This document shows, piece by piece, positions 16,520 through 61,271 of a stretch of 64,000 bases of DNA. The stretch comes from Gnetum montanum (Eukaryota; Plantae; Gnetophyta): NCBI GenBank assembly GCA_015680685.1, contig MNCI01003240.1, positions 161,468 to 225,467 on the forward strand, given 5' to 3'. Each line of letters begins with the position of its first letter. The first letter of the stretch is position 1. Made by a program: the position numbers and the translations under genes. A model generated the notes under the pieces. It was not told the origin of the DNA. It did not search any database and saw only the letters and a list, made by a program, of their open reading frames with translations.

Positions 16520-17063
16520 CTTTCCAAATCCTCCTTAGAGTTCATGTAATGGCTAGGATATAGGTAGTTGAGACTCTCTATTTGAGCTTGGGGCATCCCA
16601 TTTAAAAGTAGCCACATGTAGATGGGACATCTTACTAAAAATTGGAACATCTCACTTGGGATGTCCTAGCTAGGATGTCCCAATAGCAATTGGAACATCT
16701 ACTATTTTCTCAAGAAGTTTGGCCTCAAACTGCTTCTTCACCTCTAGGAAATCTATTAATCTTCTAGGAAATCTAGGAAGATATTTGAAACATCTTTTTT
16801 TGGCTTGTAGACTTCATGCATCCTTGTAATCTTCCATCTTGGTTGAGACTTCTTGTCATCTCAACATAACTCTCATTTTGATACCATGAGGTTCTTGTTT
16901 CAATCATCATGCCTCTTGTCTCATTCTCTTGATGTCCTTGTTTTTACACCAATAATATCTTATTACAATATTATCATCTTGTTATTTCTTAGTCCTTCAA
17001 GACCATAAGCATATTTTTCACATTTTTCATATTCTAAGGTTTTGACATACCAAAAGGTCAACA
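16520..17063 (-). repeat. Truncated 3' LTR of the SIRE-like element
   Basis: Matches 22975-23087 plus 32350-32802. Similarity stops at ~16520 (CTTTCCAAATCCTCC). Confidence 0.8.
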
Positions 17064-22365: not shown

Positions 22366-24160
22366 TTTGAGGACTGAGAACTTAGAAGGGTGATTGATTA
22401 AGTGTCCTAATTCAGAAAAAAACAAGAAAACCAAAATTGCACACAAATTTACATGGTTTCCCAACTAGGTACATTAACACTTGGAGGGTAGAATCCTTGC
22501 ATACCTCAAGACTTTGTTCCTTCAAAAAAGAAATTTACAAAGCATCACAACCTTTACAATGTTTGAGCTCCACTCAAAGTGTTTTCTCACTAGAAAAAGA
22601 CTCAACCCTAAAATATTCCAACAAGTTCAAAATGTAGTCTCAAGAATCCCATAACCTTTACAAAGACATGAGCTCCACATAGAGTGTTTTCTCACTAAAA
22701 ACATACTCAACCCCATAAGGTTTCGAAAATCTCACAAGATGCCTTCTCATAAGAAGCACATCAACCCCACAAAAATAGAAGGAAAAAAAGAATAAAGGAT
22801 ATAATGTAACTAAATTTACAAATTCCTTGTAATGAATCTCTTAATACAAATAAAAAACACAAAGATAGGGAATTGAGGAAACACAAAAAAATCACTTGAT
22901 ATAGATAATGAATATTCCAATGAATAGTTCTTATCCTTTTCCAAAGAATTTCACTTTAATTTATAGCCTTTTACTTTCCAAATCCTCCTCATAATTCATG
23001 CAAAAATAAGGAAATAGCTAGTTTGGGTATCTTATTTGAGCTTATAATATCTCACTAAAAACTAGCCATATATAGGTGGAACATCCCTGATGAGCAGTAA
23101 GGTACCCCTACGCCCAACCATATGAATCACAAAAATTCATGTATGATCTAGTTAAATTCCATGGTTGAAACTATTTGTGCATCTAAATCATTATGCCTTA
23201 ATCATAGTTCACTATCTTCCCACTTGGACTAGTGGTAGCTTTGTCACGTATGGTTTAGTCCAAAGTGAGGCATATGATGATTGATGTTGTTTAGCCCTAA
23301 GCTACTCCTAATGATAATAAAGAGATAAATTAATTGAGCTAATTAACAATGGAAAATAAAATTTAATTATCCTATGTGTAATGAGTATCTGTTCCTTACC
23401 ATCCCCACATACCTTGGACTTTGCATAACTACTACTAGGATTACCAAGTGTATGTCACTAGACATACCGAACGATACACTGTTGGGCTACCAAGTAACTA
23501 CACTTAAGCATTTTCGGTTAGTCATACTTAATCTACTTAATGATATGAATAATAAAGAGCAATAAATGGAAACATTAACTAAGAAAAATAGTAAACAATT
23601 AAATAATTAAAAGTAATAATAAATCTAAGTGGATGCTACAATGATGAAAGTAATCTCAATCTTTATTGTTAGTCATGTAACTCATCCAAGTACATCACAC
23701 TCAAATAAGGATGTCATACAATCACTTAACATCACATTGCAAGTATACACTAGAATACAAAATTCTAACAACTCTAAAATCTATGAAAAATCTATCTAAA
23801 AGCTACCTACTATATCCCAACCATTCATCCAAGTGTGGTAATTATAGGCTAGCATTGAAGGGATGATATCATATGCTTGACATCAGAGGTTGTGCCCCAA
23901 TATTAAATACCTAACATCACAACCATGATATCAAATATCTGATATTGTAGCCTTATAAAACATGACTCACCATACCCCCACAACTAAATGAAAACTCATC
24001 CATGAGTGAAAAAAAATGAGGAACAAGTTTCTTACAAAAGATTGGGAAGGTATGGGATTATTGACTAGCTTAAATAAATACAAAAATTGACTCTTTCATG
24101 CCACAATGATGTTTTATAAAAAAATTGACACAACATTACAAGACATAAAATTGGAAAAAC

Positions 24161-31334: not shown

Positions 31335-32802
31335 TATTTTTAGTTAATGATGTGTCTGACTTAATATATTAGTATTTTCTAAATGATAGATAATTAATAC
31401 CTTTATAGTGATCATGTATAATATAACTAATCTAGATAACTAGCACCATCCCCAATAACAGTGCTACTGATGAGCAGAGAGGTACCCCTATGCCCAACCA
31501 TACGAATCACAAGCATTCATGCATAATCTGGTCAAATTCCATGGATGGGACTAGTTGTGTATCTAAATCGTTATGCCTTGATCATAGTTCGTTGTCTTCC
31601 CACTTGGACTAGTGGTAGCTTTATCACATATGATTTAGTCCAAAGTGAGACATATGATGATTGATGTTGTTTAGTCCTAACTTCTAATGATAATAAAGAG
31701 ATAAATTAATTGAGCTAATTAATAATGGAAATTAAAATCTAAATTAGCCTACATGTGATGAGTATCTGTTCCTAATTGTCTATACTCACCTTGGACTTCA
31801 CATACCTACTACTGGGATTACCAAGCATACATCACTAGGCGTACCAAATGATACACTGCTAGGCTACTAAGTATCTACACTTAAGCACTCGCAATTAGTC
31901 GTACTCATTATACTTAATGATAAGAATAATAAAGAGCAATAAATGGAAACATGAACTATGAAAAATAGTAAAAAATTAAACAACTAAAAGTAATAATAAA
32001 TCTAATTGGATGCCATAATGATGAAAGTAATCTCGATCTTTATTATTGATCATGTAATGTGTCCAAGTACGTCACACTTGAATAAGGATGTTATACAATC
32101 ACTTAACATCATATTGCAAGCATACACTAGAAGAAAAACTTTTTACTACTTTGAAATCTATGAAAAAGCAATCTAAAATCTATCTACTATATCCCAACCA
32201 TGCATCCAAGTGTGGTACTCATATGCTCGCATGGAATGGATGATATCGAATGCCTGACATTGGAGGTTGTGCCTCAATATTGGATACTCGACATCATGGC
32301 CTCAATATCAAATATTTGATATTTCAACCCTACAAAACATGACTCATCAATCCCACTAAAAATTAGGATGTCTCACTTGGGACATCCCAGCTTGGATGTC
32401 TCACTTGGAACCTCCTAGTCCCAACTATAATTGGGACATCTGCTATTTTTCTAGGATGTCTAGCCTAAAACTGGATCTTCATCTCTAGTATATCTACTAA
32501 TCTTCTAGGACATCTAGGCATATATTGAAGCATTTTCATTTGGCTTGTAGACTTCATGCATCCTTGTAATCTTCCATATTGGTTGAGACTTCTTATCATC
32601 TCGACATAGCTCTCATTTTGGCACAATGAAGCTCTTGTTTCAATCATCATGCTCTTGTCTCATTCTCATGAAGTTCTTATCTTCACACCAAAAAGCTCTT
32701 ATCTTGATCTTTTCATCTTTTTCTTTCTTATTCTTGCAAGACCACAAGCATATTTTCAACATTTTTCATTTTCTAAGATTTTGACATACTAAGAGGTCAA
32801 CA

Positions 32803-35180
32803 CCAATTTCTAGCTCTAAAAGCAAGCATTATATAGAAGTTGACATAGAATAGTATCCTCAAGGTCCATCTTTACAAGCTCATTAATTTACCAAAGCTAA
32901 CATTTTTTGTAGAACCAATTTACAAGTTTGTTTATTAAGCTACATTTTGATTTCATAAATTAGTTCTATGAGCTAATGTGGAAGTAAAGGCTAAATTTCT
33001 TTTAAAAGCTCTTAATTCATTGTTTGGAAATAGTTAAATCATTAATAGAACCATTTTGTAGAGCCTTTTTTCAGTTATACAAACTCACAACTACATAATG
33101 CTAACATGGCAAAGATCATTTTAAGCTTCTTCATAGGGTTGATTTTCAACTTTATAAACTAGTTCTACAACTGATGTGGTATACCTTTTTTTCTGCACTT
33201 GCTTGTAGAACCAAATTTTAGCTTTATGAGCAAATATTTTTCTTAAAATCTAACATGGTAGAGCTATTCTCATGCTTGCTTGTAGAATTGGATTTTGGTT
33301 CTATGAGCCATGTAATCGAGCTTCCATGTCATGATATGTATCATCACCTTAATTATTGATTTTGTAGAAGCAAATGCAAAGTATCCTTTGAGAGCTTTTG
33401 GTATACTTCTTTGTCAATAAATCCAACTCATGTGCCATGTAATGAAGTTGGCATGGTAGAACAAAATATGAGCTTATTTGTAGAGCTAATTTTTGCCTCT
33501 ATGAACAATGCTCTTTCTCTAAAGCTAATAAGGTAGATACAAATTTAAGCTTGACTATAGAATAAAAGTTGGGTTCTATAAGAAAATCCTTTTTCTCTAA
33601 AGTTGATGTATCAAAGCTAATTTTATGCTTCTTCATAGACTTGAGTTTTAGCTTTATAAACTGATTCAACAAGATAGTGCGATAGAACTGTTTCTACTTT
33701 CACTTCATAGAACTGAATTTTAGCTTTATGAGTGATGCTTTTTTTAAAGCTTACATGGTCTAACGATGATGTGTCTTGTAGAACCATATTAATCTCTCTC
33801 CATAGAACTAGATTTTGGTTCTATGAATCAGGGCTAACAACTTACATGATAGAGCTGAAAAGTATGTTTCTAGTAGAACCATTTTTTAACCCCATGAATC
33901 TTCCCATCTGAATAGAGCTTTCTTGGTAAAACCATTCTTAGCAATTTTTTTCATAGAACCATATTTTGGTTCTACTAATCTACTTTACATGATAGCTTGC
34001 GTGTTATATGGGATACACATATACAAAGCTAATTTCAGTCTTTCCTTATGCTTTATTCTCGTAAAGAGAAATCAAGTAGAACCATCTTCTAGAGCCAATT
34101 TTTGTTTCTATGAGCCTCTATGAGTTGAGGTGGTAAGCATACTTAAGAAAATCCTTTCTTTCAAATGAATCTTGAAACCTCTTGTAAAGCTAATTCTTGG
34201 TTTTGTTACTCTACTCCTTTTATCAAAATGATTCAAAAGTATTAAATCAGCCTTGGATAAATCTCCTATTTTGGAAATGATAGGATTTATTTCTTTGCTC
34301 AACTATTTTCTCTAATGAAAATCTTGTATTTAGATGAACTTGATCTTTTAACTCTATGAGTCCATCTTTGACAGTCTTATCTTAACTAGCAAATAGAATG
34401 AGTGTCCCTCTAGGAAGGAAGAGCATCCCTTTGGGCTAGATTAAGCTCATTCAAGTTTTATCTTTCTAATTAGTCTACATGATGTTAGGTATAATTTAAA
34501 ATCATAGTGTCTTAAATGAAATCATCTCCCTAGAAACATTCCTTTGAATCCATGATTATTCATTCAAGCTTTACTATGCTGCAGAAACCTAAAATTTATT
34601 TCTACATTCGTATGCATTCTTTCAATCCATGGGCCTTTTACTTAACTTTCAAACTTAAGTTCTGATGCTTTATTCATACTACAACTCTCATTAAAAACTT
34701 GGCTTTAAATCTTTGAAACTCAAAATCACAATTAAGGCCTCAGCTTTTTGTTCCTTCAATTTTAATTTCTAAAGTATTCTAAAATATAGAGTTCCTTTCT
34801 TATCTAAATGTTAAGCTATATTAAAATCAAAAATCATTATCAGTTTGTATAATTCACTTTTTAGTGAGTCTTAATGTCTTGAGATATCAAATAGATTTCT
34901 CTTATTCCCAAAATGGAAGCTTAAAATATTATCTTGTTTCCATTTTAATCAACATAACAATGGTATAAATATAACTCTAAGGTAGATAACTAGGCTTCAT
35001 TAAGTTCATAAGTTTCATTCAAGACTTGAATGATAATCTTTAATTCTTAAACTAGGTTTCGTACAAGAGTTACCAACTTTACCTATAACAAAGCAATTTT
35101 CTTTAGCTAATTTTCCATTATTTATTGAGTAGAGAGAAAGACTTTAGCCCTACTCCATTAATGACCAAAATGGGACAATA
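32803..35180. repeat. Second copy of the 3699-6030 tandem-array/ORF segment
   Basis: Colinear similarity from CCAATTTCTA... to ...TTTAGCCCTACTCCATTAAT. Confidence 0.9.
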
Positions 35181-35476
35181 CTATACTACATGGTAGAAAC
35201 TTTATTCTTGGAACTATTAAAATGAAGAAAACAAAGTCAAGTACCACCATAAGAAAATATGGAATAGAAAAGATTAGGATATACATTTTTTAGATAGAGG
35301 TCATTGCATTTGTCCAAATATTCTTGTGGTAGAAGAGGGCTATGAAAATATCATCAGTTGTTTTATACATGTGTAATCATATGAAATAGCTGTATAAATC
35401 ATACTATAAGCTACTTCTCACACATCTACTGAGAACTCTTTCTATTTATCTATTCATTACTCTTGAAGAACCTTCA

Positions 35477-36120
35477 ATGATTACTCCATTAAAAGTAGTA
35501 AAAAAGTCAGATACACGAAGCAAGAAAGTAGCAAAAATTATAAACAAGAATATTAAGGTGGCAAAGATGGAAAGAGGATATTTCCATCCTAATTTTGCTA
35601 CAAGCTACCAAATTAAAATTGACTAATGCACTCAAACTCCTGACAAGTATAAAATTAGAATAATGAACATGAAGTACATCAATGATCTTCTTGCATCAAT
35701 GAGAATGAATCTTGTCATTATTATGCATGATTGCATATTCTTTCCATACAAAACTTCTACCAATGAGGCTATTACATCTTCATCTAAATCTAAGACTCAT
35801 GGGGAAGATTTTTGATTCTAGATTCTAAATGAATAGCATTTGATTTAGGCTACAAAGATTCTTCTTAATAGAGATAATGTTGAAATGTTAGTGAAAAATC
35901 TCTATAGAGTTCTTCATGTCAAGCTTCTAAAGATTGACACTCTAGTCTTTGTGATCATGAAAATTTGTTACTCAAAATCAGGTTCAGGGCATGAAATATG
36001 ATCCTTCCTAAGTGTATATCTTGAGGCATGCTAGAAGCAATCTCTACTAAAATAATATTAGAAAAATATCTTCTAGTGAAAATTCAAAAGAACTAAAGCC
36101 AATCTATGATAGCCTTAGAT
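35477..36120 (+). pseudogene. ParB/Sulfiredoxin-like domain ORF, degenerate
   Basis: One frame reads IKID*CTQTPDKYKIRIMNMKYINDLLASM...F*F*ILNE*HLI*A. Reverting deamination-type changes gives FWILNGQH.IQA, a ParB-type xGQH motif. Confidence 0.5.
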
Positions 36121-37288
36121 TTATATTCAAGAAAATTATTTATGTTTGATCTCTAGAGTAGATCATTTAATATATCATGTATTAAATCATTGACATTTCT
36201 TGTATCAAATTTATTATATGTTATTAGTGTACTTACATTCAATTCCCTTTAGAAGAGGAATATTTTTCTCAGGTTTGATGACATTCTCTTCAAAAAATGA
36301 AATAATATTTTCATGATGTATTTGAATAATACTTTACAATGCTACTCATTGATGATCTCCAATGAAAATTTCAAGGATAACAATCTTAAGTAATTAAGTG
36401 CCAATGTGTTCCACCTACTATAAGGTCTCAGGCAACATGAAATTGAGATAAGTGCTAATGTGTTATTCAATGGGAAAATGTGTTTAAAGCATGTCAAGGA
36501 AAAGGATAAGAAATGAAAATATATAATTAAGAGAATGATCATACTAGAGCAAAAATGTGATCAAATGAGGCATTCATATTCTTTGAAGCTTGCACTAATT
36601 TAATTCTTTGTTAGTAAAGATACATGGATTTATTGATGCATAAAACTTAATGTAGATAACATTTGTAACAAGTATTGATTTATAATTTAATATCATCTTA
36701 TATTTTTATTTTCATTATATATGATAACTTTTTAATCCACACTATGCTTTTTAACTACAAATACAAAATTTATGATTACATGTTTCTAATCTTGCTTGGA
36801 AACATTGAGTTTACTAAAGAGGACCTAACATCGAACCTTATGTTCAATCAATAGTGCATGGATACTTGAAATCTCTTAATTCTATAGATGCCATGAATAC
36901 AACCACCCAAGCAATTAAAGGTATTTTTTGTTATCGGGAGAACATGGAGTTCGTAGATCTTACATTGCTTAGATATGAGAAGAAATTCTCTTTTTTGAAG
37001 ATATCAGTAGTTTTCTATTTAGTTAGTTTTCAAAATATCTATCTTTTTTCAAACATAGATGTATATATTTAGTATATGCTTAATAAGGATATCATAATAT
37101 GTTTGAAAGATAGATTTACTAATATGGTAAGTAGGACTATTAGCATATTTTTTGTAATAATTTTATTACTATTTTCTATTGTAATTATTTTGTTATTACT
37201 AACATTACAAGAATAACCAAGATACATATATTTTGGATGACAAGGACAACAAAAATTAGGAGGAAGAACCAAAATAAGATAAGGTTAG

Positions 37289-37442
37289 AAAACATGCTAA
37301 ATTTAAAAGTCATTTTTTTGCACAATTCTTATAAATATTTCAGTAACTGTGTTTAATGTGTTTATAAAACATGCTAAATTTAAAAGTCATTTTTTTGCAC
37401 AATTCTTATAAATATTTCAGTAACTATGTTTAATGTGTTTAT
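37289..37442. repeat. Near-perfect 2 x ~77-bp tandem duplication
   Basis: AAAACATGCTAAATTTAAAAGTC...AATGTGTTTAT is repeated at 37289 and 37366. Confidence 0.9.
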
Positions 37443-38279
37443 TCATATTTGAAATATAGGATGATAAGGGTAAATAGAATAAATCAATAAATCTAATAAG
37501 GGTGGAGATAGTGAATTTGACGAGGAGGCAAAAAAAATGAAGATTTGGTAAATATATATGTTCATTTAGATACTTTTGTTAGTTTAATATATGAATTTAA
37601 ATATTTAGCCCTATTGCTAATCTTCACTATTTTAACTAGGAGACACAAATATGTTTGTCTCATTCGAAATAATTGGCCAAAGTATAGCACATAAAGTTTC
37701 CAGCAATAAGGGTAAGGTAACTAAGCTTTTGTTAAATGATTTTTTATAATAATTGATTTTATTACGAATAGATTTTATGATTTTTTTATTCTACAAGGGA
37801 AAATTTCACCACCATTAAAGGTATCAAAAAAATTTAATATTAAAACCTATAAGGAATTAAAAAAAAACATTAATATATTGTGTAGAATATATTTCATGTC
37901 TTGTAATCTTATATTTATTAATAAAATTTGTTATATAAAAACATTTTTGTATGTTTGAAATGATGAGAGTGAGAGTTCAGTGAAAGGTCCAAATAAAAAA
38001 TGTATGAGCATGTACTTATTATACCTAAATATCTATTATTTTGAAATGTATTTTATTCATGGAGAGGATTAAATTATATAACTATGATAGAGTAACTATC
38101 TCCCTATAAGCATTGCATATCATAATGATCTTCATGCTAACTCATTTCTTAATAAACATTATATTGAGATTAATCCTAAATGTCTAACATATTTACTTTA
38201 ATTAGTTGCATCAAATAAACAAGGTGATCATGTTGATTTGAATAGTTCGGCTTCTGTGGTAACCAATTTCTATAGTTCA

Positions 38280-39030
38280 AATGAGTTAAAATAAATACTT
38301 CAAAAAGGGAATGAGTTAAAATTTTATGATTTACCATTTCTACCAAAATACTGTGATGAAGTTCTATCTTCTATAGAAGGAAATTTCATCAATGAAAAAG
38401 ATTTATCATATTTGAGACCAAAATAAGAAATAGACGATATAATATTCAGATAATATTTCAAAAAGTTGCAATAAATTCTAGAATTTCATTCACTATATTA
38501 TTTTTTTGATCCATCATTATTATCTGAGTCACATAGAAGATCTAAAAAGGAAGATGATGACTTAAAGCTAAGACAAAGTATCTTGACTTTGATTGAGCAA
38601 TTGGATACACGGTTTAGCAAGTTATCAAAAAATATTTTTTTTCCTATAAATATCAAGATTGGAAGAAGTGTGCATCTTTGGGTGCTTATTATTATTGCTA
38701 TGTTGGCAAGCTTGATACTAATCATGGATTTTCTTAATAGTAATATTGAATGTAGCAAGTAGATTAATATTGTTTACAAGTACCTTGAGGAGGAACACAA
38801 TGTTTAAAATAGAGAGGATCAATTTCATCAGAAACTATGGAGACAATTATTTTAAAGAAATATACTAAGGTGGAGAAAATAATATGAATGTGGTATTTAT
38901 ATTCTACTTTATGTAATATAGATAATAACGAAAGGGACAATATTAATTAGGGCCTTAGATGTACCAATGTATAGATGGAAAATCTTGTGTGATATTTTAA
39001 ATGCTTCTAACAGGCATACAAGATGGTTAT
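38280..39030 (+). pseudogene. Ulp1/SENP-family (peptidase C48) SUMO protease domain, degenerate
   Basis: One frame reads KDLSYLRPK*EIDDIIFR*Y...NIFFPINIKIGRSVHLWVLIII...IMDFLN...KYLEEEH...YECGIYILLY, with His-Asp-Cys in Ulp1 order. Confidence 0.78.
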
Positions 39031-39269
39031 AGTGATAAATAACTATAGAAAATTTTGAATTACAATTTTCAATTATATCATGTTATTTATGTTTATACAA
39101 ATTTATTTGTCAAATTAGCATTTTTTTAATATTTATTTGTTTTCAAATTTAATTATGCTAAGTACTATAATTTTTCATAACTATATTCAGTTGCTTAAAT
39201 CAGTTTTCTTATATCTAATGTTAAATGGATGTTATGATTTTTTGATGTATGTATTGTGAATATTTATAG

Positions 39270-39860
39270 ATATAGTTAAGAAACTAGAAATAGGAAAAGT
39301 AATCATACTAAACTTAAATGGTGTACTTAAGAAGGATGTTCATTATTCAAATGTGGAAGAATTAAGGAAGCATACTTGACCTTTTAATATCATTTTGGGA
39401 AAAAAGTACTACTTTATTTGACCAGATATTCATGAGTTCCTTACTAGATTGATCAAAGAAGGATTTGAATATGCATTTTTATCATCAACTCAATTTCCCA
39501 ATGTTGAAATCATGATAAGTTTTCTTATCAAACACTTGGATATCGAAACAAAATTCACTTGGTATTAGATACAATGTATAAAGCATTATCACAAAGGTAC
39601 TATGGTTCCAAGTTTTCAAAAACCTTTACAACACTTTTTCTAAATTTATGGAAGTCAATTTGCATGAGAAAATGTCATCATAGTTGATGATACAAGTGAT
39701 AAAATTCTAGAATAGGATAATGATAACTTTATATAAGTCCAAAAAATGTGATCCTAATAATTTAGGTGATGACTACCTTCTTAGCAAGTTGCTACCATTA
39801 ATTATAAATCCTTTAGTGAGAAATTCACTATTGAGGAACTATTAAGTTCAAATAATTAAC
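39270..39860 (+). pseudogene. FCP1/NIF (CTD-phosphatase-like HAD) domain, degenerate
   Basis: Follows a TTTATAG acceptor: KVIILNLNGVL (DLNGVL), FI*PDIHEFL (FxRP..EFL), AFLSSTQFPNV, WY*IQC, NVIIVDDTSDK, DDYLLSKLLP. Confidence 0.78.
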
Positions 39861-41299
39861 ATTTAAATATGTTTGGATATATGTATTGTCAAATATAAAA
39901 TGTGTGTTTCATTCTAGGAAACCTATAAGTAACTTTTACTATAACTCATTTTTTATTTGTTGATAAATATAAAACTTTTTGTATCTACTTATGAGCCTAA
40001 CAGTTATTAATATTTAATTTCATTAAAATAAGTTTATTTGTCAAACAAATTAATATAATCTTTAGACAAAGAAATATGTACATCAACATAACATAGTTTT
40101 TAATTCATTTAGAATCTTTGTTAAATGTAATTGAAATTTCTTTTTCATGATCTTGGTTACTGATTTAGATTATCCTTGCATACTTATGAAATATTAACAT
40201 TCAAAAATAATTTAACTAGCATAAGATTTTTTATATCTTGATAGTCATATGAAATATCTTTATATAGATATTTAATATTATCTCTTTAGGAATTAATATT
40301 ATTTTTTAAATTAATAAGTTTCATAATAAAAATTAATCATGAGCACAAAATAACCCTTGATACAATAAAAGCATAGTCAATCATTTAGGAGACTAGGGTA
40401 CTTAATCATTAAAAGATAATAAAATATTCAACAATTAGTTGGATGCTTTTGAAAACATATATGAGATAGAAAGATAAATAAGATTTATTACATCCTAAGA
40501 TTTCCAATCATAAGAATGTAAAACACTCAATGTAAAAAAAAATGTAATAATGTTAGTTCTACAATGAAGTTAATATGATACTTTCTGCTATAGTTTAGGA
40601 GACTGGAATGAAAATATTCCAAATATAATGAAAAACTCCCTATTTAATTTTAAAGTTAACTTTAATGATAAATTACCATTATGATCATGACAAAACTCTC
40701 CTACTAGCATTTTGACTTTGACTTTAATAACAAATTAACACCTTAACCATAATGAAATGGCATAGATGTCTTAAACTTTCACTTAAAATAATGGAGAAAC
40801 TATATATTGCTATCAAATTAAATGTATTATATAAATGATTTCAATTTTGCTACTAATGGCTAACAAAAAAAATCTTTTATAGAAATGATTCAAAAGGTGA
40901 TTTAAATTACTAAAGTGAAAAAAATATTACATTAGTAAAATTTTGGTACTAACCCAACAAAAACACTTGTTATTAGATTAGTAAAAAGAAAATTCAATAA
41001 CAAATACAAACTACCTTTACAAAGGCTAGTACACGGTAAGGTAGCAAGACGAAAGAACACATATGAAAAGCAATAGGCAAGTTGCAAAAATCAAGGACCT
41101 TGACAAGACAACATCATGATGAAGCTAAAGAAAATTGGCAATGGAAATGGATCTAATCATTCTCCACTAAGGAAGTTGCAAACCTAGGATTTAAACATAT
41201 TACTAACCCAAAGATTACAAAATCCCTAAATCTATAATAGTTAGTATACTGTTTAGGCCTACAAAGTATACCCTACTAATTGTCTAGGAACATATGGTC

Positions 41300-44752: not shown

Positions 44753-45311
44753 TGTAATATCCACATTTCTAAATCATGCTACTACATAACAAAGATGGTG
44801 TCTCTTCATAACAACATTATGATTATCATAAGAAGACCTAAAAAGACAAGTTATAAGTAAGACATAAAAGGAAATATTGTAATAATGAACATGTTTCTTG
44901 AGGTAACCTTTGGAGGTTTAACCTAAGGTATTTATACCTAGGCATTAGAAGTTGTATCAGCATGGAGTTGTAGAGCTAGTGAAGGCAAGTAACAGGTGCC
45001 AGCTGAAGTGAGATAGAAAGAGGACTAGCTATCCCTTCTAGTTGATTGTAACCCTAACTATGATGGTAGTGTTGGATAACCTCTAAAGGATAGATGCTAA
45101 GGGAAGATAATTCCAAGGAACTCTTTGAGCATGACCTAGATTCACTATTTCACATTAATAAGACATTTTTTTCTTCTCTTCTTCTGCATTTTTCCTATTA
45201 TTTTCTATATGCATAATGTCAAATGTTATATATATTTGATGTTGGCATGTTATCTTCTTATGATTAATGTCTAATATAGTGTTCCATGACATTTGTGAAT
45301 AGGATGTCACA
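44753..45311 (+). mobile_element. Solo LTR, same family as 12324-12898
   Basis: TGTAATATCC...GGATGTCACA with perfect TSD CTTAG. Confidence 0.88.
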
Positions 45312-45388
45312 CTTAGCAACTTTAGGTCTTAAGGGTGGTACTAAAAGGTGCTTCCTAGAGTAGTGTTGTTACACTTGGCATTAGAGCC
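45312..45388 (+). mobile_element. 3' end of an older LTR (...TGTTACA at 45373) with decayed iMet PBS
   Basis: TGTTACA-CT-TGGCATTAGAGCC resembles TGGTATCAGAGCC. The 5' start of this LTR is not located. Confidence 0.55.
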
Positions 45389-48962: not shown

Positions 48963-49943
48963 GGCCAGAAAAGTCAATATTCATTAAGGGTTCAGTATGT
49001 TTTTAAGATTTATTTTTAGATTTAGAATGGAATCTTCAAAATAGGTACAAAATATTTCTTTTACATTCTTTTTTTTTAGTTTTGAAAATGGTTGCCTTTA
49101 ATTGTTTTTCATCCAAAAAGAAAAATGAAAAGATAAAGATTGAGGAAAAGAAATAAGAAAGGTCCCAAGAGTTAGTTTCTTTAGTTCATAAAACTAAAGA
49201 TAGTTATAAAAGGAATGTGATAATAAAAATAGTTTGCAAATTTTTAGGATTAATTGCTCATGAATTTACCAAATAAAAGTGTTCTTATTAAATGACATTT
49301 AATAGGCAACATAAAAATTCAACTTGAATTCAACCTCCCTGAAATATTACAAGTTACTATAAATGTATCAAAAATAATTTGAAGCATCCTCAAGAAGAAG
49401 AAAGACAATAAATTTTTAAAGGAAAAAATTCTATCAGTATTCTGTTAACTTCTAAAACCCTTGAGACTTCTATAAAACAAGGAATTTCAACTAATAACAA
49501 AGAAGGGAATCCAACTGAAATTTTCAACCACGATGAACTAAAAATACAATGTCCATTTTCAATAGCATTGAATCCACTATTAGATATCTTGAATGTTACA
49601 ATGCAAATAAAAAATTCTAGCTTTAGTTGTAGGTTCCCAAAATTTAAGCTTCAGCCAAATATTAAGTAATATGACCACTATGGGAGGGAGTATCCAACCA
49701 ATAACTACATTAAATTTTCAAACCCCTCTCACTTCATTAGCTACCTCTATCTCTCTACCAACTCCCATTATGATTTTAATCTTGGGTACCTCTTTTACAA
49801 TTCAATATCCTTTGCATAAAATATCACCTTCAATTTTACAAAGTTCACTTCCTCTTTCTTTTGGAAGCATAGACTTCAATATTCCATTAGGTTAAGTATT
49901 TCAAGGATAGGCTTTATGAAAATTTTTAAATAAAAGAAGATCA

Positions 49944-51130
49944 ATGATTCATGAAGGACTTTTAGTTTTTCCACCAAGAAGAAATGTAGAATTCAAGAAA
50001 TTACATTTAGTATCCATTTTTAGAGGAACTACTAATGAAGACCTTATAACTCATGTAAGAGAATTTGAAGCCATGATAGCTATGCTAGTACCTCAAGAAC
50101 AGGATAGGAAAAAAATGATAGCTTTCAAATATACTTTAAAGGATAAAGTTACTTTTTAGCTTAAAAAATTGCAAATCCAAATAGTCTTATGGGATGAATT
50201 TATGGCAAAATTTATTCTATGGTTCCTCCCTAATGATAGATTATATGCTCTTAGAAAACAACTTATGAGCTTTACATAGAAAAAAGATGAGGATTAAGAA
50301 AACACCTTTGATAGGCTTAAGGATCTATGCCTTTAAAATACCAACCATGAATGTCTAGCATGACAATTAATTCAAATCTGTATAGAGGGGTTATTACCAT
50401 ATTGTAGAAATAATGTAGATTTTACCTTTTGGGGAAATATTTTAAATGTAACACTATAAGTTAGCATGAAAATTTATGATTCAACTTATGGATAATAGCC
50501 ATAAGTATGGGATTTGATTGGAACTGAATAAAATTGTTTATTATCTACATGATTTCTTTGACTTTCAACAGTTCCTTCATAGATACAACCTATGCATTAG
50601 CCATAGATGAGATGACATTCCTATAATGAAAGTAATCTAGCCCCAAAATTTTGGCTAGCTTGTCAATTTGGCAAAAATGAAGGGTGAAGAATTATTGACT
50701 CTCTATTAGATCAAAGCAAACATTGGCCAAAACTAGACATCATATAAGGTTGCATCCAACAAACTAAGAAATTAACTAGAAATGTTGATGAATTATCAAT
50801 ATTAGTGAAGAAACAATCTTATTTTTCTTAGGAGGAAATTTGTAATTTATGTGAAAACAAGCAACATGACATCACAACTTTTCTAGCCTTGGTTTGTTGT
50901 AATGAAGAAATTCAAGAATTAGTAAGAGCTTTTCAACAAATAAGGAATTTATCTTCTTTACCATTTTAGCCAAGACCATTTTACTAATAATCATCACCAA
51001 TTCCTCAAAATAATTATAGCTTACTTTAAAATCCGGTTAATGAGTAATTGGATTGCTTAACTTAAGTTTTAATGGCTTTCATAGAAGAGAATAGGCAATT
51101 TGTAGCTGAAACAAGAAGAAATTTCAAGAC
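49944..51130 (+). pseudogene. gag: Athila gag, degenerate
   Basis: FRGTTNEDLITHVREFEAMI...AFKYTLKDK; CNLC...H zinc-knuckle remnant near 50840. Confidence 0.75.
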
Positions 51131-54100
51131 TTAACTAAAAGAAATTTACCTTATTAGACTAAACCAAACCCACAAATCAAAGGAAAGCCAAAGAGCAATT
51201 ACATTTTATCCCTACAAGAAGTGGGAAAACCATTGAACCTATGCATATTAAGAAAGTTATATTTAAATATAAATTTTAAGAGGCACAAAGAGAGCATCAG
51301 TCATATGAAACACTTGTATTGGAAAAGGAAGGAAGTAAAGAACCATTGAACAAAGGAGAATAGCCTTCAACATCTCCATCATCCTTAAATAGAAAGATAA
51401 ATTCACCACCATTCCCTAGATGTCTGTAAGAATAATTTTTCACTAAGGCACATATGAAGAAAATGTTTAAAGAATTATATTTACATATTATCCTTGAGCA
51501 TGTTGTAAAGAATACACCAATTTATGCCAAATATTTGAGGGAATTAAGTACAAAAAGAAGGAAAGAAGAGATCCCTAGACAAGTATATTTGGTTGATAAC
51601 TTATCTTAACTCATAAAAAGTTGTGAAATTCCAAAATACCAAGATTCGGGAGTTCCAAATATTCCCATAAAAATTAATGGAAAGTGTCTTAAAAATGACT
51701 TATTAGATTAGGTGCTAGAATTAATATCATGCCACGTATAATGGCTAAGACACTAGACTTGGAAAATATCAAGAGAGTAAACATGTCAATATCCTTAGTG
51801 GATGGCTCAACTGTTAAACCTATAGGAGTAGTAGAAGATTTAATAATGGAAGTAGAATAGGAAAAATACCCCATGGATTTTGTTGTGTTAAAAGTAAAAG
51901 ATCCAAATTATTTTTCAATTATTCTAGAAAAACCCTAATTAGCAACAACCAATGCAATTATCAGTTGTAGATCGAGGTAACTCTAGTTAACCTTTGCCAA
52001 TCTCACATTTACGCTTAATATATTTCATAAAGCAAAGTAGGATAGAATAAATCAAGATATTAAAGAAGCTAGGATGCTTTATACAATACCAACATCTATC
52101 ATGGCTATGGATAGGGAAATATTAGCTCTCAATAATTTTGAGGAGGGATCCTTAGATTCTTCCACAATAGAACTTCTTGGATCAAATTTTAAATTTGGGA
52201 TCAGGAAGTATCAAAGATACCATTCAACTACCAATTAATGATTCTCTAGAAATTTTTGAACTACCTAAAACCCTTAAGTACATTTTCCTTGATGAAAATA
52301 AACCATTAATAATAAATTTTCATCTATCCAACAATCAAAAAAATAAATTAATTAAGTTTTTAAAAAGAAAATCCAAGGCATTTGCATGAAGCTATGAGGA
52401 TCTCCACTAGGGAATTTCATACAACATATGACAACATTATATTTATCTAGAAGACAATGTTAAACTAGTTAGAATTCATCCTAGATGAATCAATCCAACC
52501 TTGAGGAAAATCATTAAAGATGAAATTTCTCAACTTGGGAAGGAAGGAATTATTTATCTAATCATTGATAGTGAATGGATGAGCCCTATCATGGCAGTAC
52601 CCAAAAAGGGAGGGAAATGGTAAGTTTGTGTAGATTATAGAAAACTTAATCAAAGCACTAAAAAACATCATTTTCCTCTACCATATATAGATTAGATTTT
52701 GGAAAGATTAGAAGGGAATGTATATTATTATTTTTTGGATGGGTTTAGTGGTTACAATCAAATAGTTATTGCACCAGAAGATCAACATAAAATAGCTTTT
52801 ACATACCCATATGGTACCTTCACCTATAGATGAATGATGATTAGTCTTTGTAATGCACTTGCTATCTTTCAAAGAACAATGATATCAGTATTTTCTGATA
52901 TATTAGAGGAGTACATGGATGACTTTTCATTATATGGAGATACATATGAACAAAAATTAGATCAATTAGAATATGTCTTGGATAGATATATAGATAAAAA
53001 CTATTAAGTTAGGAAAATATTCATTTAATGATAACAAGTACTGTCATTTTATGATATGTAATCTCTATGGAAGAAATTAAAATGGATGATGAAAAAGTAA
53101 ATATGATTTCTATACTTTCAGCCCCAAGCAATTTAAAAATACTTTGGTCTTTCTTAGGTCATGTCAAATATTATAGATGCTTTATTAAGGATTTATTAAG
53201 TATTACTAAACCTCTTTAACATTGGAGAAAGATGTTCCCTTTACATGATATGGAGATTGACAAAAAGCATTCTCTAAACTTAAGGAAAGAGTAACTACTA
53301 CTCCAAGTTCTTAATTCACCTAATTGGAACTTTCCTTTGACTTAATATGTGATGCTAGTGACATAGCTATTAGGGTAGGTTTTGGCCAACACATAGAAAA
53401 TAAGCCTAGTGTAATTTACTATGTTTCGAAAATTTTAGATCAAGCTTAAGTAAACTACACAACTATAGAAAAGAAACTTTTGGCAATTGTATATGCACTG
53501 GATAAGTTTAGACATTATTTAAAAGGATACAAAACTAGGGTATTCACTAATCATTCAGCCATAAAATTTATAGCTAATAAAAAATAACAAACTGCTAAGA
53601 TTATGTGGTGATGTCTTTTACTCCAAGAATTTGATTTAGAAATTCTAGATAAAAGGGGGAGAGAAAATGTTATGGAAGATAATATTTCTAGAGTAGAAAC
53701 TCTAGAAGAACATAGGATAGGAGGATTGTTTAATGATAACTTCCTATAACAACTCTTTTTAGTAAAAAATGATCTATGGTTTATAGATATAGCAAACTAC
53801 TTAGGCATAATGAAAGCACCAACTTAATGGAGTAAGAAGGAAAAGAAATCATTTCTAAAAAGTATCTTAAAGTATATTTTGAATGAACCATATCTCTATT
53901 GAATATGTAGAGATGAAGTGTTAAGAGGATGTGTTGTAGAAAAGGAACAACAAGAAATCCTCTGGATGTGTCATGATAACCTTAGAGGTGGACATATTAA
54001 TAGTGGTAGAATTGCTATAAAAATACTACAAAGTGGGTTTTATTAGTCCAAAATTTTTAAAGATTATTATATATATGTCCATAAATGTGACCAATATAAA

Positions 54101-55664
54101 TGCTTAAGGGAAATGACTAGGATACAAGAATTCCCACTTAATTCCATCTTAATAATAGAACCTTTAATGTATGCAATATAAAAATTTTAGAACCATTCCC
54201 ATATTCCAATGGATGCTAGTATATTTAATTATGTAAAGATTATGTTACCAAATGGTTAGAGGCTAAAGCTACTCAAAAAAATGATGTTAAGGTAGTTATA
54301 GCTTTCTTGAGAGAGCACATTTTGACATGATTTGGGACTCCATGTGTAATGATTAGTGATCAAGAGACTCATTTTGTAAATAAAATAATGGACAAATTTC
54401 TTCAGGCTTTTGGAATCCAACATAATATGGTCATTTCCTATCATACAAAAACTAATGATTAAATTGAAAATACTAATATAATCATTCTAAAGATCTTAAC
54501 AAAAATAATTTATACTAAAAATAAAGATTGGTCTAGAAAATTACAAGATGCACTTTGGGCTTATAAGATTACTTATAAACCAAACTTAGGATATTTAACT
54601 TATTAATTAATTTATGTTAAATAGTGTTTATTGCCTATTGGAATAAAATGCTGATGAATCATGATTCATTAGGCTTTGATAATGAACCTGTGATATTGGA
54701 TCCATGATATCAGGTATGCGATATCGTGACCTAAATAACGATATCAGATACATGATATCATGATTCCTGTGCAAGCCTATAATTACACCCTTAGGCACAT
54801 AGGAGAAGAAGTTTAGCAAGTAGTCTAGTTAGAAGTTAGTTTTCATTTTTAGTTCTTCTCAACCCTTTCCCCCAGTGCATGCCCGCAGTGTGATGATTGT
54901 AATTGTACAACACCTTTATTCGAGTGTGACATACTTGGACATGTACATGACTAGAAATTAAGATCGAGATTACTTCAACATTGTAGCATTCACTTAGTTT
55001 AATTATTTACTTATTTTATTAATTAATACTTCTTTACCCTCAACTCTTATCCCTATTACTAAACGTGGAATGAGTACAACTTAATCACAAGCATTTAAGT
55101 GTGACTACTTGGTATCCCAATAGCATACCTAGGATATGTGCTTGGTAATCCTAGTAGTATTTGTACACGAGGTTCAAGATATGTACATATGAGTAAGGAA
55201 TGGATGCTCATCACACTTAGGCTAGCTTATATTCTCTTCCCCTATGTCCTATTAGTTAGACTCTCTCTCTCTCACTTTCTCCTAGCTTAATTAAAGTTAT
55301 TTTCCATTGCTTGTAGGAGTAGCGCTAGTTTAGGAACACATCATACACCTCACTCTAGACTAAACCATATGTGACAAAGAAAATATTAGTCTAGGTGGGA
55401 AGATAGCGAACTGCAATCAATGAGTAACTATCTAGATACCACAACTAGCTTGTCTACAAAGTTCGATTGAATCATGCATGAAATGCTCATATTTGTATGG
55501 TTGAGTTTAGGGGTACCTAGCCACTCATCATTGGCACCATTGTCAGGGATGATGCTAGTTATTTAGATTAGTTATATCATACAAGCTTGCTATAACAAAG
55601 TATTCATGATATATATCTTAGAAAAGAAATTAATTTTATTTAAGTCACACAAAAATTTACAACC

Positions 55665-57573
55665 ATGTCTCTCTCACAAGACTATGATAATGCAACAACT
55701 AGTAAGGGAATTCATTGGAGAACCAATGAATTATATGATGATGAAGATGAAGTTTGGAGTACTCAATCTGATGTAGGGGTCTCCTATGAACGTAAACAAA
55801 GACAACATTGTCCCAACTCACAAATGCATAACCTACCTAGTGACGATGAACCCCTACAAGCCACGATGAGCCTAATGTAGATACAAGAGGCTATTCGAAT
55901 ATCCCGTAGGCATCGCAAGGAAAGCCATCTACCCAAGCTTGATTTAAATTTTTTTTTTCAAATTCTTAGGAGGTTAAGATTTGGATCCACAACATCATCT
56001 ACAAGCCTTCCATGATGTCTATGCATGGAACAATATTGATAATGGGTGGAAAAAACTTAAGCTCTTTTCTACAACAATCGTTGGCCAAGAAAAAGTATGG
56101 TATAGGTCCCTAAAACCAAAATCAATTTGATGTTGGCCAACAATGGTAGAACACTTTAATGAAAGATATCAAACTTATGTGAGAGTGTTAGCCTTGAATA
56201 GACAAATCCAAGAGTGGAAACAAGCGTAACAAGAACCCTTGGACATGGCCTTAGAAAGATATTATGGATTGTTAAACAACTGCCAAAGCCATGGGTTCTC
56301 TGAGGAAAGGCTAATGTGCCATATCATAGATGGGCTTCATAATGAAATAAGGGAAACCTTAGGGATGTATTCCTGAGAACAACTATATGAGCTATGAACC
56401 CACCAATTTCAAGAGCTTATTAAGTGCGTAGAAAAAGAAGAAGGAGAAATGGCTAGATGGGAGAATGTTGAAAAATCTCAATGGGACCAAAATCTTCAAT
56501 CAACAAGGGCCTATGATTATGCAGAGGAGAAATCAACTCATCTCAAGGAGTTGGAGACATCTTTGTCAACATTGGAATCATTAAATGAAATTGAGGAAAA
56601 GATCAATAAAATGATGGAATGGATACATGAAAAATGTGGAGAATGTGCCAACATTGTTGGAGGTAGAGTTATGACGAACCGAGAAGTAGGACAAAATACC
56701 ACTAGATAATCGAAAAGAAGGGTAGAAGAGAATAAGAACTTAACTTCCAATCATACGTATCAAGGCAAAATTTTCCTATATGATCACGCCAAGGGCTAGT
56801 GCCCAATCTTGTTACATTTACATGACCATTGGGAATGATTGTTACATCTAGAGTTCATACAGAAATACTATTTTCGCTCATAGTTGCAACAATCCCAATC
56901 ATGGGGGAGGCCACCCCCAAACTAGTCATACCCTTCATACTATCCGAACCCAAATGCTTATCAAGTTCAACATCTTGATTCCCCCATCGGGTCAACATCC
57001 TCTATCTCAGCACATTATCATCCTCCTCCTCAATACCATCAACCCATATCCTCTCCAACAGGACCATCACCTCATGTGTTCTACACTCCTCAATTTCAAT
57101 ATTCTCATTCTTCACCTCCTTCTATATTGCCACCAATTATACCCAAAGGATTTGCACCACAATAGCAACCCATAAACGTTACTTGTGCTACTACTGCTAA
57201 TAGTAGTGGGAAACCTCCACAACATTGAAGGTGTCCCTTCTTTAGACATGACCATAATAAGGGATAGCATAGTTTCGAGACCACTACATCCTCCAACTCA
57301 GCACAAGTTCAACATTGTGGTGCATCTTTCTTCTTTAACCCAATGCCTCGTGTTATCTTATTAGGGCCACTAATCACTACTCCAACAACCATATGACCCA
57401 ATGAATATAGCCATGTAGGGAGACATATCAATCCTTGCATACCATCTTACAATCACATGTGTCATAGTGGGTGAACTCCTTATCAATCAACCACATCTTA
57501 TAACTTGCCCCACTATGTCAACATTAATCAAGTATGTGAACCCCAGTTTGGGTGCATTCTAACCACCACATAA
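55665..57573 (+). pseudogene. gag: Athila-like gag, degenerate
   Basis: MSLSQ start; DLDPQHHLQAFHDV..WNNIDNGWKKLKLF...WYRSLKPKSI; homologous to 29006-31334. Confidence 0.8.
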
Positions 57574-58516
57574 AAAGACACCTAGTGGTTTGGGTATGAT
57601 CAGGTCCCAATATTACCAACATGCAAGGATCCCAACCTTCCATTTATTAATCCTAGCCATGCTTAACTATTTAGTTATGGGGGGTATCCTCCATTCTAAC
57701 AAGTAGGATTAATAAATGTTTTTTCTTTTCTTTAGTTTTAAAATTTTTTGTTTTCCAATTTTTCATTTTTCAATTTATTGTTTTATCTTTTTATCTTTAT
57801 ATCTTTTTATAAGTAATCTTACGTACGAATAAAGCACTTATGTGACTCGTTGGTTTAGGTGTTTTTCTCTATTATCAAGTCTCACGTGACTAATTATTTG
57901 GATAGTGAGCCCACAACATCCACTCATCCATTCTATTAATAAGAATGGACCTCTTATTAATATCAGGGCTGTGCTATCGGGTACGTGATGTCATGTGCAC
58001 AAAAACTATATATATGGACCCCCTTGTGCATGTCAACATCATTCTCAACTGTTCACATGGGGGAGTTTTTCAAATTTTCTTCCATGAATTACGACTTGCG
58101 CACCTCTTAGTCTACCAGCCATAGCTCACTCGCTAGTGCTCCGATTCTCATTTCGGTTGAACCTACCTCAACCTAGAGTGTTTAGCTTAGTCATGAGGGA
58201 GGGGTACACTACAAATTATGCATAAATTTTTCAAAATTCGTCATTTCCTGAAAGATACTATAAAGGGTAATTAATTATAAAAATGATAAACATGTTTCCA
58301 AAAACAATCTTACCTCCTCACCTATACTGGGAAAATAAAATTTTGAAGCCACCTAATCAAATTGGGCCTAACATTAAAAATTTTAGGGGACATTTTCACA
58401 AAATTTCTTAACTATGAATCACATGGAATAAGAGACAAATTCATTAAGGCAAGAAGTAAGGTATAACTTAACTTTTGTAAACAAACTTACTAATGATTGG
58501 CCCCATGTGATTGCAG

Positions 58517-61271
58517 ATGGCCCCTAAATGTGGATAACAAGAAGGACCCTCTCAAGGTGTGTCCAAGCAACCAAAAAGAGGTAGAGGTGAGGCATCTCTT
58601 GAGAAATGTGCAGAGTAGAAGTCATAATCATTTAGCATCCATTAAGAGACTCCTACTACTGTGCAATCAGGATAGGCAGAAGGAGGAGCTCCTGAAGTGC
58701 TCAAATAGGGACAACACCTCACATTGTTCCCGGAGTATGTTCAGGCCATCCATGAAAAGTACACGTCAGTAGCAGTTATTGTGGAATTGAATTTTAGACC
58801 TTTCACAAATTTTTCTCCTAAGGCTATTAGGGACCAACTCAAAGGGTTCCCATTAGGGCCTATCCTCTCTAAAAGTGGTGCCTGGTACTTAGGAGAAACG
58901 TACCAATTTTGGCACAATAAAGAAGAAGGCACCATAGTTGATATAGGTGGTGTATCTGTAGATTTTTTTACCAAGGCCATTTCAGAAGTCTTAAACCTTT
59001 TGAATACAGGGCCAAAAGTTGCTCACTTGCCCACTCGCTTTGATGTTGATGCACAAAGAATTTGGTTGAAAAGGATGTATGGCAAGGAGGACAAGACATA
59101 TGGAGAGTTGATGTTGGAACAGAGAATATACTTTAAGATTTGCACTTATCACATCTTCCCCATGAAAGGATTAAACAAAATCTCAAGCTATGCAGTAAGA
59201 GGACATGAAATATTGATGGGTAAGGTTAATGCTAACCTTCCCCATTTGTATCTCATGGAGATCTTAAGGTAGTTTGAAGAATGCAAGATAGGGAAGTTCA
59301 CGTTGCCGTTCCCTTGTCTCATTAGGAAGCTGTGAAAGCATGCTGGAATTTTGGGGTACACAAATGACGTCCCCAGAAGAGCACAAAATGCTTTGTTTGC
59401 TAAATTGCTGAAGCCACCAACTCCAATGAAAAGTGTTGGTGAGACACTAGAGCCAGAGCAAGAATAGACAACTCCCAAGCACAAGACCTAATCAACAACA
59501 AGAAGCAGGGCCCAACACTAGCCAATGAGACCAACCACTACCATTGTTGCAGGATTATCAACCATCGATGAGCCATCTCAAGGCCATTGCTGAGATGGTC
59601 AGTTGGGGAAGTCATGATGATGCTAATCTCTTTCATGTCATTGAAGACATTGTATGGCCCACATTTTCCATAGATCGTGCATGGGGTGAAGTGTCCATCC
59701 AAAGAGGAGGAGGGGAGACACATTGGTCATAACAGATTTTAGGAAATGTTACATCTTTCCAAGTACAATTAGAAATCGGTGAAGGGGCCACAGTATTGGT
59801 CATGAAGCGCCAAGATGCAGTGGGAGCCATAAAATTGATCAAAAACCATATCAAAGATTCCTTCAATGTCCTTGTTGTGCTATTGGTATATTTCATAGGA
59901 GCACACAATGCTCAAACTCTGGCCGATCCCTTGATGACTCCTATAGAACATGAGGATGTCTTTTACTAGTTGTTGTAGATAGGACAAGTAAAGACATCCT
60001 TTTTTGACATCCCACAAGATGTCACAACAACTCAATTAGACCTCATCTCCATCAAGGGGAAGTTGTTCATGGTAGAGATCAAGGCCAAGCATGTGGAGAT
60101 GGAGTTGGAAAGACTCCAAGAGAGGCTCATCACCTTGCAAGATGCATAGCGGGACCCATCTCAATTCATTCCCATAGACCAACTAGATTATTTTAGAATG
60201 GAGTAACTCAATAAATTATTGGTGGATAATAAAAAAGTGGTAAAGGAGAAGGAGAAGGCCAATTGGGATGCTTCCAAGGCATAAGTGCAACCATACGTGC
60301 ACGTCAAAGCACTCAAGGCCTTACAGGAACAGAATAAACAACTTGCCACTAACAATCTTCGGCTGACCACTATGGAGAAATAGAAGAATGTTCTCAAAGA
60401 AAATTTTTAGCAGTTACAAGATTAGCTAGTCAGGGTTAACCAAGACATGAATTGCTTGGCTAGAGAGATTTTAACCCTCTCAATGGAGGAGGTACATGAA
60501 ATCCATCAGAAGACAACCATTGAAATAAGCATGTGGTAAAATGAGGCCAAGCGATACAAAAAATTAAAAGAGAATTTTAGAGATTAGGTGGGGAAGTACA
60601 AGAAAATCATTGAGAAATAGATCCATATGGCCAAGGCCCACATTAACACCTTTAGTGCTTAGCACACTAATTGGCGAGCCATATTGGACATATATGCATT
60701 CATCCACCAAGCAAAGCTCAAAAGTTGGGACCTACAAATTCAAGATCTTATAGAGTACATGGAACTAGAAAACCTTCAATATGCCAATCTAGCCATGTTG
60801 ATAGCAGGATTCCTGAGAATATAGCTAGAAAAGGAATTAGGTACCACCTACATCAAATATGAAACACAATTTGTGGAGCACAAGAAAACATTGCAAAGGT
60901 TAAAAGTCATAAATTTTGAATTGGAGGTGGTCAAGGCTAGCTACTAGGGGTAGAAAGATGTCATGAAAGACTTGGCTCGATGGCTTATAGATCTCCAAGG
61001 GTACAAGGATAAAGCTTGAGCCTATGAGGAGGAACAACAGTTGTTTGCAACCTGGTATGTCAAAGCAAATTAGATGTTCCCGCAACTACCATGTCCATGG
61101 GAAGTGCCAACTCCATGAAACATTGGAGCATCATCATGGATGGCATAGGACCCCCAAACTAAAGAGGAAAAGCTCTAGGCACCCCTTTAAAGCCATAAAA
61201 TTCCAAAACCTAGAGCACAAGACAAGGGAAAGTGACCCATGGAGGAGCCACCGCCACCTGGAATCACATGA
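58517..61271 (+). pseudogene. ORF2 (Athila env-like / plant transposon protein domain + coiled coil), degenerate, ~900 codons
   Basis: The ATG (MAPK...) is in frame with ORF 58724-59272. Contains GTIVDIGGVSVDFFTKAISEVL and TLPFPCLIRKL, with a heptad-rich C-terminal half. Confidence 0.78.

Follow-up and report, generated by a model that had tools for sequence, protein, structure and literature searches.

What kind of element left the protein-coding debris that lies in a 64-kb stretch of DNA from Gnetum montanum (Gnetophyta; contig MNCI01003240.1 of assembly GCA_015680685.1, positions 161,468 to 225,467), and did the parts of this debris ever work together? The whole of this stretch, hereafter the window, was searched, and all coordinates given below are window positions. 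It is AT-rich plant DNA with a GC content of 25–40% and almost no long open frames. An initial annotation had singled out positions 35,477–39,860 as a module of three co-oriented, decayed plus-strand domains, namely a ParB/Srx-like domain, a Ulp1-type SUMO protease and a domain resembling phosphatases that act on the C-terminal domain (CTD) of RNA polymerase II (Pol II). On the plus strand between 35.4 and 39.9 kb we found three stretches, in each of which stops are fewer in one frame than in either of the others, which indicates that all three were once coding and that none of them is so now. What emerges plainly from their analysis is a Ulp1 domain followed by a HAD domain, an adjacency of the two that is conserved across copies, a copy number of about 20–30, and the advanced decay of the copy in the window.

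The middle stretch (37,959–39,029) is a relic of a Ulp1/SENP-type (peptidase C48) open reading frame (ORF), lying in a single frame and recognizable by stop depletion, by its conserved boxes and by its paralogous copies. Frame 0 (coordinate modulo 3 equal to 0) contains 15 stops here, as compared to 29 and 46 in the two alternative frames (binomial P ~1e-5). Direct reading of this frame gives, in order, an 'FFPIN' segment, a His box 'VHLWVL' (38,670–38,687), an Asp box 'MDFL' (38,724–38,735) and a Gln/Cys box 'RWRK*YECGIY' (38,868–38,900, with the Cys part 'YECGIY' at 38,883–38,900), after which a C-terminal tail runs into three consecutive stops at 39,030–39,038. The His-Asp and Asp-Cys distances are 17 and 54 residues, all in one frame; the corresponding values are 17 and 49 in yeast Ulp1 and 17 and 53 in SENP1/2. 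In the window copy the catalytic His is replaced by Leu. To recover the state of the family at this and other positions we used contigs of two DNA runs (X1 and X2), aligned to 35,000–40,500 at a likeness of at least 80%. At position 38,677 the paralogous contigs have A (191 of 207 in depth in X1 and 212 of 218 in X2) where the window has T, which turns the box into 'VHHWVL'. Similarly, the contig-end consensus of the other copies over 38,852–38,900 reads F-Q-R-N-I-P-R-Q-R-N-G-F-N-C-G, matching the canonical Q-x-N-G-x-D/N-C-G box, in which the Gln of the oxyanion hole stands at Cys-6, whereas the window has TGG for CAG (Gln to Trp) and TAA for AAT (Asn to stop). The catalytic His, Asp, Gln and Cys of peptidase C48 are thus all found in canonical order and spacing, with the Gln and His taken from the family consensus.

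The TGG codon at 38,871–38,873 differs from the CAG of the other copies by two changes, from which it follows that the damage here did not consist entirely of single deamination steps. The initial annotation had described most of the stops as being of the deamination type, a description that carries no information, because a single transition suffices to turn CAA, CAG, CGA or TGG into a stop, and every stop codon can arise in this way. Profile searches with the Pfam Peptidase_C48 model (PF02902) gave an e-value of 0.035 (14.4 bits) for a 95-aa stop-free piece containing the His box (38,475–38,759), and it should be noted that unrelated pieces give chance Pfam matches at the same level. A HMMER search with this 95-aa piece against 1.84 billion representatives drew in nothing other than a spurious tandem-repeat protein, P0001. 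We nevertheless regard the identity of the Ulp1/C48 relic as confirmed on sequence grounds, with the decisive support coming from the other genomic copies; the stretch also has the highest read depth of the region.

The third stretch (39,266–39,712, plus strand) begins 236 bp past the end of the Ulp1 frame and in a different frame. Its frame 2 contains 5 stops as compared to 14 and 11 in the other frames (binomial P 0.011), and the order of its motifs and the state of its copies point to a relic of a cap-less HAD phosphatase-like ORF of the NIF/FCP1/SCP type. The motifs that can be read directly are motif I, 'KVIILNLNGVL' (with 'LNLNGVL' at 39,308–39,328), motif II, 'YAFLSST' (with 'FLSST' at 39,476–39,490), and motif IV, 'ENVIIVDDTSDK' (with 'IIVDDTS' at 39,677–39,697). 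Motifs I and II are separated by 57 aa and motifs II and IV by 68 aa, as in cap-less NIF/SCP phosphatases, so that both the S/T of motif II and the DD/DN of motif IV are present at cap-less spacing. Motifs I and II lie too close together to accommodate a cap domain, which, along with the DD(S/T) form of motif IV, agrees with a place in the NIF/FCP1/SCP branch of the superfamily. This cap-less HAD family (PF03031) includes a plant 'DLNG' subgroup as well as the catalytically inactive TIM50. The HAD of the window resembles its members in how motifs I, II and IV are ordered and spaced, in the lack of a cap insertion and in its 'DD(S/T)' motif IV, but differs from them in going undetected by Pfam on its stop-free pieces, in being borne by a repeat rather than being a host gene, and in motif I, where the expected DxDx(T/V) is replaced by N-L-N-G-V (39,311–39,325) with Asn at both acidic positions. 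An Asp codon would need only one G>A change to give the first of these Asn residues, while the second may be native to the 'DLNG' subgroup.

In other copies, two of the stops of the HAD frame are sense codons and the 'LSS' of motif II is kept. All ten of the best leads returned by the Atlas for the HAD piece belong to the HAD superfamily, one of them to NIF, at scores of only 0.76–0.81. Regular expressions for the Ulp1 and HAD motifs matched once in the window and in 0 of 200 locally shuffled windows, a result that is indicative only, as the expressions were composed after the sequence had been seen. Together, these sequence features confirm the stretch as the relic of a HAD phosphatase-like ORF. 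An inverted repeat, 39,310–39,352 / 44,876–44,918, was considered as a possible second HAD and rejected as a chance match.

Whether this pair of ORFs is peculiar to the window could be judged from the DNA runs. The stretch is near-identical in the runs of three organisms, and 1,255 and 1,117 contigs in the two runs fall on 35,000–40,500, two thirds of them less than 90% alike to it. Single diverged contigs have a depth of about 8–9 in X1, which is about equal to that of the one contig matching the window at 99% identity; accordingly, the contig counts approximate copy counts. At single positions, 18–21 contigs cover the Ulp1 stretch, 22–31 the HAD, 6–14 the upstream stretch and, in the two runs respectively, 18 and 11 the point 39,217 in the spacer between Ulp1 and HAD. 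This AT-rich spacer (39,030–39,265, plus strand) is co-amplified with both of its neighbors, and contigs bridge 39,160–39,209 within it in both runs. The order Ulp1-spacer-HAD is therefore a property of a family of about 20–30 copies, at an identity of at least 80%, in this plant and its close relatives, and the succession of Ulp1 and HAD is a feature of that family and not of the pseudogene of a single-copy host gene. Read depth peaks on Ulp1 and on HAD and falls in the spacer, a pattern that suggests past constraint on the coding parts. The spacer itself could be either intergenic or an intron, and its end, ...TTTATAG/ATATAG, resembles a splice acceptor. No reads joining Ulp1 and HAD were found in two RNA runs, one of which, an oligo-dT run, yielded 0 reads and is not a valid negative, as the presence of the organism in it has not been shown, and the other 69 partial reads of low complexity. 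A deletion joint in one contig (36,787 to 38,369) was set aside as an artefact of a short internal similarity.

The upstream stretch (35,558–36,000, plus strand) proved to be a different case. Among the 147 codons of its frame 2 there are 5 stops, while the other frames have 13 and 19 (binomial P 9e-4), and this depletion indicates that it was probably once coding. The initial annotation had read it as ParB-like on account of a motif that appears in the window as 'ILNE*HLI' (35,822–35,845, plus strand, by direct reading) and had been repaired to ILNGQH. Neither of the two pieces of the stretch matched ParB/Srx (PF02195) in Pfam, phmmer searches of the PDB with them returned noise only, and the Atlas gave no usable match. 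In the DGQHR motif of DndB and the GCHR motif of Srx, an Arg directly follows the His. The window has N-E-stop-H-L at this point (35,828–35,842), and no single transition would convert the Leu codon, TTG, into one for Arg. An AlphaFold 2 (AF2) model of a 62-aa piece of the stretch is one long helix; however, the Ulp1 His-box control, which was expected to contain strands, also came out as a long helix, so that the fold test was without power. The likeness to ParB/Srx proteins, DndB included, thus comes down to a short motif ('ILNE*H' versus DGQH) and a vaguely similar pattern upstream of it, whereas the stretch differs from them in a loop about 18 aa longer than that of ParBc, in the absent Arg and in finding no support from profiles, structures or features.

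Other families can be fitted to the same sequence. By eye, the same ~150 residues align about equally well to MIF4G and to the DDE transposase of PIF/Harbinger elements, 'ILNE*HLI' being also similar to the 'DGTHI' box in the series DGTHI ... NRKG ... GSxHD. A reading as the MIF4G domain of eIF4G (from 'IMHDC'; eIF4GII, PDB e-value 0.68) was dropped as being at noise level, as the Ulp1 piece matches eIF3c by chance at an e-value of 0.09. That several families can be aligned in this manner implies that reading motifs by eye is unreliable in decayed AT-rich sequence. Thus, of the three decayed domains initially proposed for the plus strand, the Ulp1 and HAD relics stand, and the ParB domain, with no match to its profile and with Leu in place of the Arg, could not be confirmed.

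These observations lead us to interpret the locus as one member, dead and heavily mutated, of a middle-repetitive element family. The ancestor of this family would have carried, on one strand, an upstream coding stretch, then a Ulp1/SENP-type cysteine protease ORF and then, 236 bp beyond it, a small ORF for a cap-less NIF/FCP1-type HAD phosphatase-like protein. Its carrier would have been a Mutator-like DNA transposon (Mutator-like element, MULE) of the KI-MULE/VANDAL kind. Elements of this kind have an accessory gene that joins an N-terminal DNA-binding part to a captured Ulp1 domain; here the NIF-like domain would have been captured or co-opted as well. Taken jointly, with the ancestral gene order and the type of carrier included, we consider this interpretation moderately probable. 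A KI-MULE/VANDAL-type element is the most likely carrier because captured Ulp1 domains are documented in such elements (PMC13317346, PMC5735166, PMC2528002), and we infer both this carrier type and any activity of the encoded proteins from comparison with them. Analogy would suggest a protease that takes off SUMO or a related modifier and a HAD part that binds phosphoproteins, for example the Pol II CTD, or dephosphorylates them, in each case to the benefit of the element. No function is possible at the window locus today: it is a dead relic in which nothing can work, given the 5, 15 and 5 stops in the three frames, the mutated His and Gln of the protease and the replacement of both acidic residues of HAD motif I by Asn.

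KAONASHI (KI) MULEs and the KIU genes of VANDAL elements are known from Arabidopsis, and similar Ulp1-carrying MULEs from melon, rice and grapevine (PMC13317346, PMC5735166, PMC2528002). KIU combines VANC (DUF1985 + DUF287) with Ulp1, and Ulp1 has been captured by MULEs that lack terminal inverted repeats (TIRs) (PMC13317346, PMC5735166); in the KIU accessory genes, DUF1985 and DUF287 lie upstream of the protease (PMC5735166). Like these systems, the family described here is a plant element present in many copies, in which a captured Ulp1/C48 domain forms the C-terminal end of an accessory ORF whose N-terminal part is not a protease, with non-coding repeat arrays nearby. It differs from them in that the window offers neither a MULE transposase or termini nor a DUF1985/DUF287 signal, and in that the Ulp1 ORF is followed by an ORF for a NIF/FCP1-type HAD, which is not mentioned in the papers searched. 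Our literature search returned no paper combining Ulp1, a transposon and FCP1, and no phosphatase is mentioned in a 2026 review of gene capture.

Several results weigh against the derivation from a KI-MULE/VANDAL-type element. In the window there is no MULE transposase, SWIM finger, TIR or target-site duplication (TSD), and the flanks of the module are long terminal repeat (LTR) retrotransposon debris, the rest of the window consisting of nested Ty3/gypsy remains. The stop-free pieces of the region 35.2–38.3 kb, which are decayed and 30–84 aa in length, matched neither DUF1985 nor DUF287. The C48 match lies below the Pfam cut-off (14.4 versus 20.7 bits) and is seen on the His-box piece only, and the 39-aa and 48-aa pieces of the HAD gave no match to PF03031/NIF in Pfam and none in the PDB. 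No relative of the pieces was found among 1.84 billion representatives or 5.8 billion clusters. Finally, most copies were perhaps dead by the time of their amplification. Beyond these, a search for homologous proteins with the Ulp1 and HAD pieces returned nothing, its length window and word index making such blanks uninformative, and scans of metagenomes with the same pieces gave pattern matches of which none was confirmed by tblastn.

The immediate neighborhood of the module bears on the question of the carrier. Upstream lies a repeat (32,802–35,172) with a degenerate array of ~77-nt period at 33.1–34.1 kb, which could be part of the same element or separate from it; a dip in depth (35,368–35,551) separates it from the module. 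Over 2.4 kb it is 77% identical, in direct orientation, to 3,698–6,025, and in both paralogues a ~34-nt motif recurs as a degenerate array, spaced ~72–216 nt apart. The paralogue at 3,698–6,025 is not followed by the module; it lies upstream of a putative CACTA/CCR4 region and ~1 kb from where the integrase of a minus-strand gypsy element has its C-terminus. Downstream of the module, a TG...CA unit resembling an LTR (44,753–45,312) has a paralogue at 12,324–12,899; the two are ~575 bp long and 77% identical, begin with TGT..., end with ...ACA and have short inverted ends, and the unit is probably a solo LTR. The first 60 nt of this ~575-bp unit are also found at the ends of the direct repeats 8,042–8,656 and 11,783–12,387 (87% identical), which flank the CCR4-like region. 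Within the region between the upstream stretch and Ulp1, a 77-nt tandem duplication (37,285–37,442) of 97% identity stands amid old, decayed sequence, and must on that account be far younger than the decay of the module.

The remainder of the window bears out the initial description of the module as embedded among transposons, its surroundings being nested Ty3/gypsy debris. A plus-strand Ty3/gypsy element with gag, protease, reverse transcriptase (RT), RNase H and integrase occupies 49,920–54,650 and 62,369–62,851; its integrase is split by a nested element (54,652–62,339), the integrase C-terminus resuming at 62.37 kb. The nested element has 879-bp LTRs (54,652–55,530 and 61,461–62,339; 94% identical) and holds the longest intact ORF of the window (58,724–59,272, 182 aa), which we take to resemble a 'plant transposon protein'. 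An LTR-like pair, 23,087–23,972 and 31,467–32,349 (84% identical), belongs to a 9.3-kb element that appears to split another repeat, the segments 22,974–23,085 and 32,355–32,802 matching 16,520–17,063.

Among the alternatives, the one that survives best holds that the ORFs belonged to an LTR retrotransposon of the Tat/Ogre type as a block of accessory genes, perhaps in antisense, and not to a DNA transposon. The nest of Ty3/gypsy remains that makes up the window, the proximity of the paralogue of the upstream repeat to the minus-strand gypsy integrase and the LTR-like unit downstream of the module would all accord with such an origin. Against this, no remnant of gag, protease, RT or integrase was found on either strand in 35–47 kb, whether by tblastx with the pol genes of the window itself or by Pfam searches on the pieces, and the paralogue at 3.7–6.0 kb lacks the module. 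The same 35–47 kb contained no pol, transposase, SWIM finger or zinc knuckle that would identify a carrier of any kind, and Pfam searches on 20 further stop-free pieces returned nothing. We regard an LTR-retrotransposon origin as rather unlikely.

Another explanation would have the stretches be fragments of unrelated host genes, or separate genes lying side by side, in a Pack-type mosaic that was passively amplified and never constituted a functional unit. That the stretches are in different frames, that the Ulp1 frame closes in three stops before the HAD, that fewer contigs cover the upstream stretch (6–14) than Ulp1 and HAD (18–31) and that no RNA joins the parts would all be expected of a mosaic of this type. 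Most captured fragments turn into pseudogenes (PMC13317346). However, stops are depleted in one frame over 150–360 codons in all three stretches, and the peaks of depth on both domains, with the drop in the spacer, suggest past constraint on what they encoded. A purely passive mosaic thus appears unlikely to us.

A further possibility concerns a concerted action of the encoded products. An ancestor in which a sequence-specific DNA-binding N-terminal domain (ParB/DGQH-like or VANC-like), the SUMO protease and the Pol II CTD-phosphatase-like module acted together, as one spliced protein or as an operon-like gene pair, to reactivate or protect the chromatin of the element can be envisaged, but we consider it distinctly unlikely. 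The more specific proposal of the initial annotation was that a large undescribed DNA transposon encoded one accessory protein with ParB, Ulp1 and CTD-phosphatase domains, which would target DNA, strip SUMO and phosphate marks and perhaps counter silencing. Its parts are indeed co-oriented and co-amplified, and the VANC/KIU anti-silencing proteins of VANDAL elements provide a precedent (PMC5735166). Yet the ParB component found no support from Pfam, the PDB, the Atlas or AF2, the Arg after the His is missing, and the upstream stretch aligns by eye to MIF4G (at the noise-level PDB e-value of 0.68) and to the PIF/Harbinger DDE boxes just as it does to ParB. Nor is a single transcript or protein evident: the Ulp1 frame ends in three stops, the HAD resumes in another frame 236 bp further on, and no RNA joins them. 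No transposase is linked to the module and the window has no TIR or TSD, which leaves the large DNA transposon a guess, and an anti-silencing role through the removal of SUMO or phosphate would be speculation. A tri-domain protein of this kind is accordingly very unlikely.

Least of all do we favor the pseudogene of a host gene that is single-copy and syntenic, an outcome that the initial annotation had named beforehand as refuting it and that the near-identity of the locus in three organisms might have suggested, but that is rendered extremely improbable by the hundreds of diverged contigs (among the 1,255 and 1,117 mentioned above, two thirds of which are less than 90% alike) that cover every part of the region in the same genomes, single ones being as deep (~8–9 in X1) as the 99%-identical one.

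We therefore return to the interpretation of the locus as a dead copy of a Ulp1-carrying element family, most likely of the KI-MULE/VANDAL type. Ulp1 is a long-known cargo of plant Mutator-like elements, and among its carriers are VANC/KIU, the only anti-silencing proteins of transposons to have been characterised. While Ulp1 borne by transposons is thus familiar, the literature searched did not yield a Ulp1 ORF with a NIF-type HAD ORF consistently behind it. The window locus, as a dead relic, has no function to test, and the finding is a modest new twist on the known Ulp1-carrying plant transposons. A family with both a Ulp1 and a NIF/FCP1-type ORF would nonetheless add a second module, one that removes modifications or binds phosphoproteins, to the current picture of these Ulp1 carriers.

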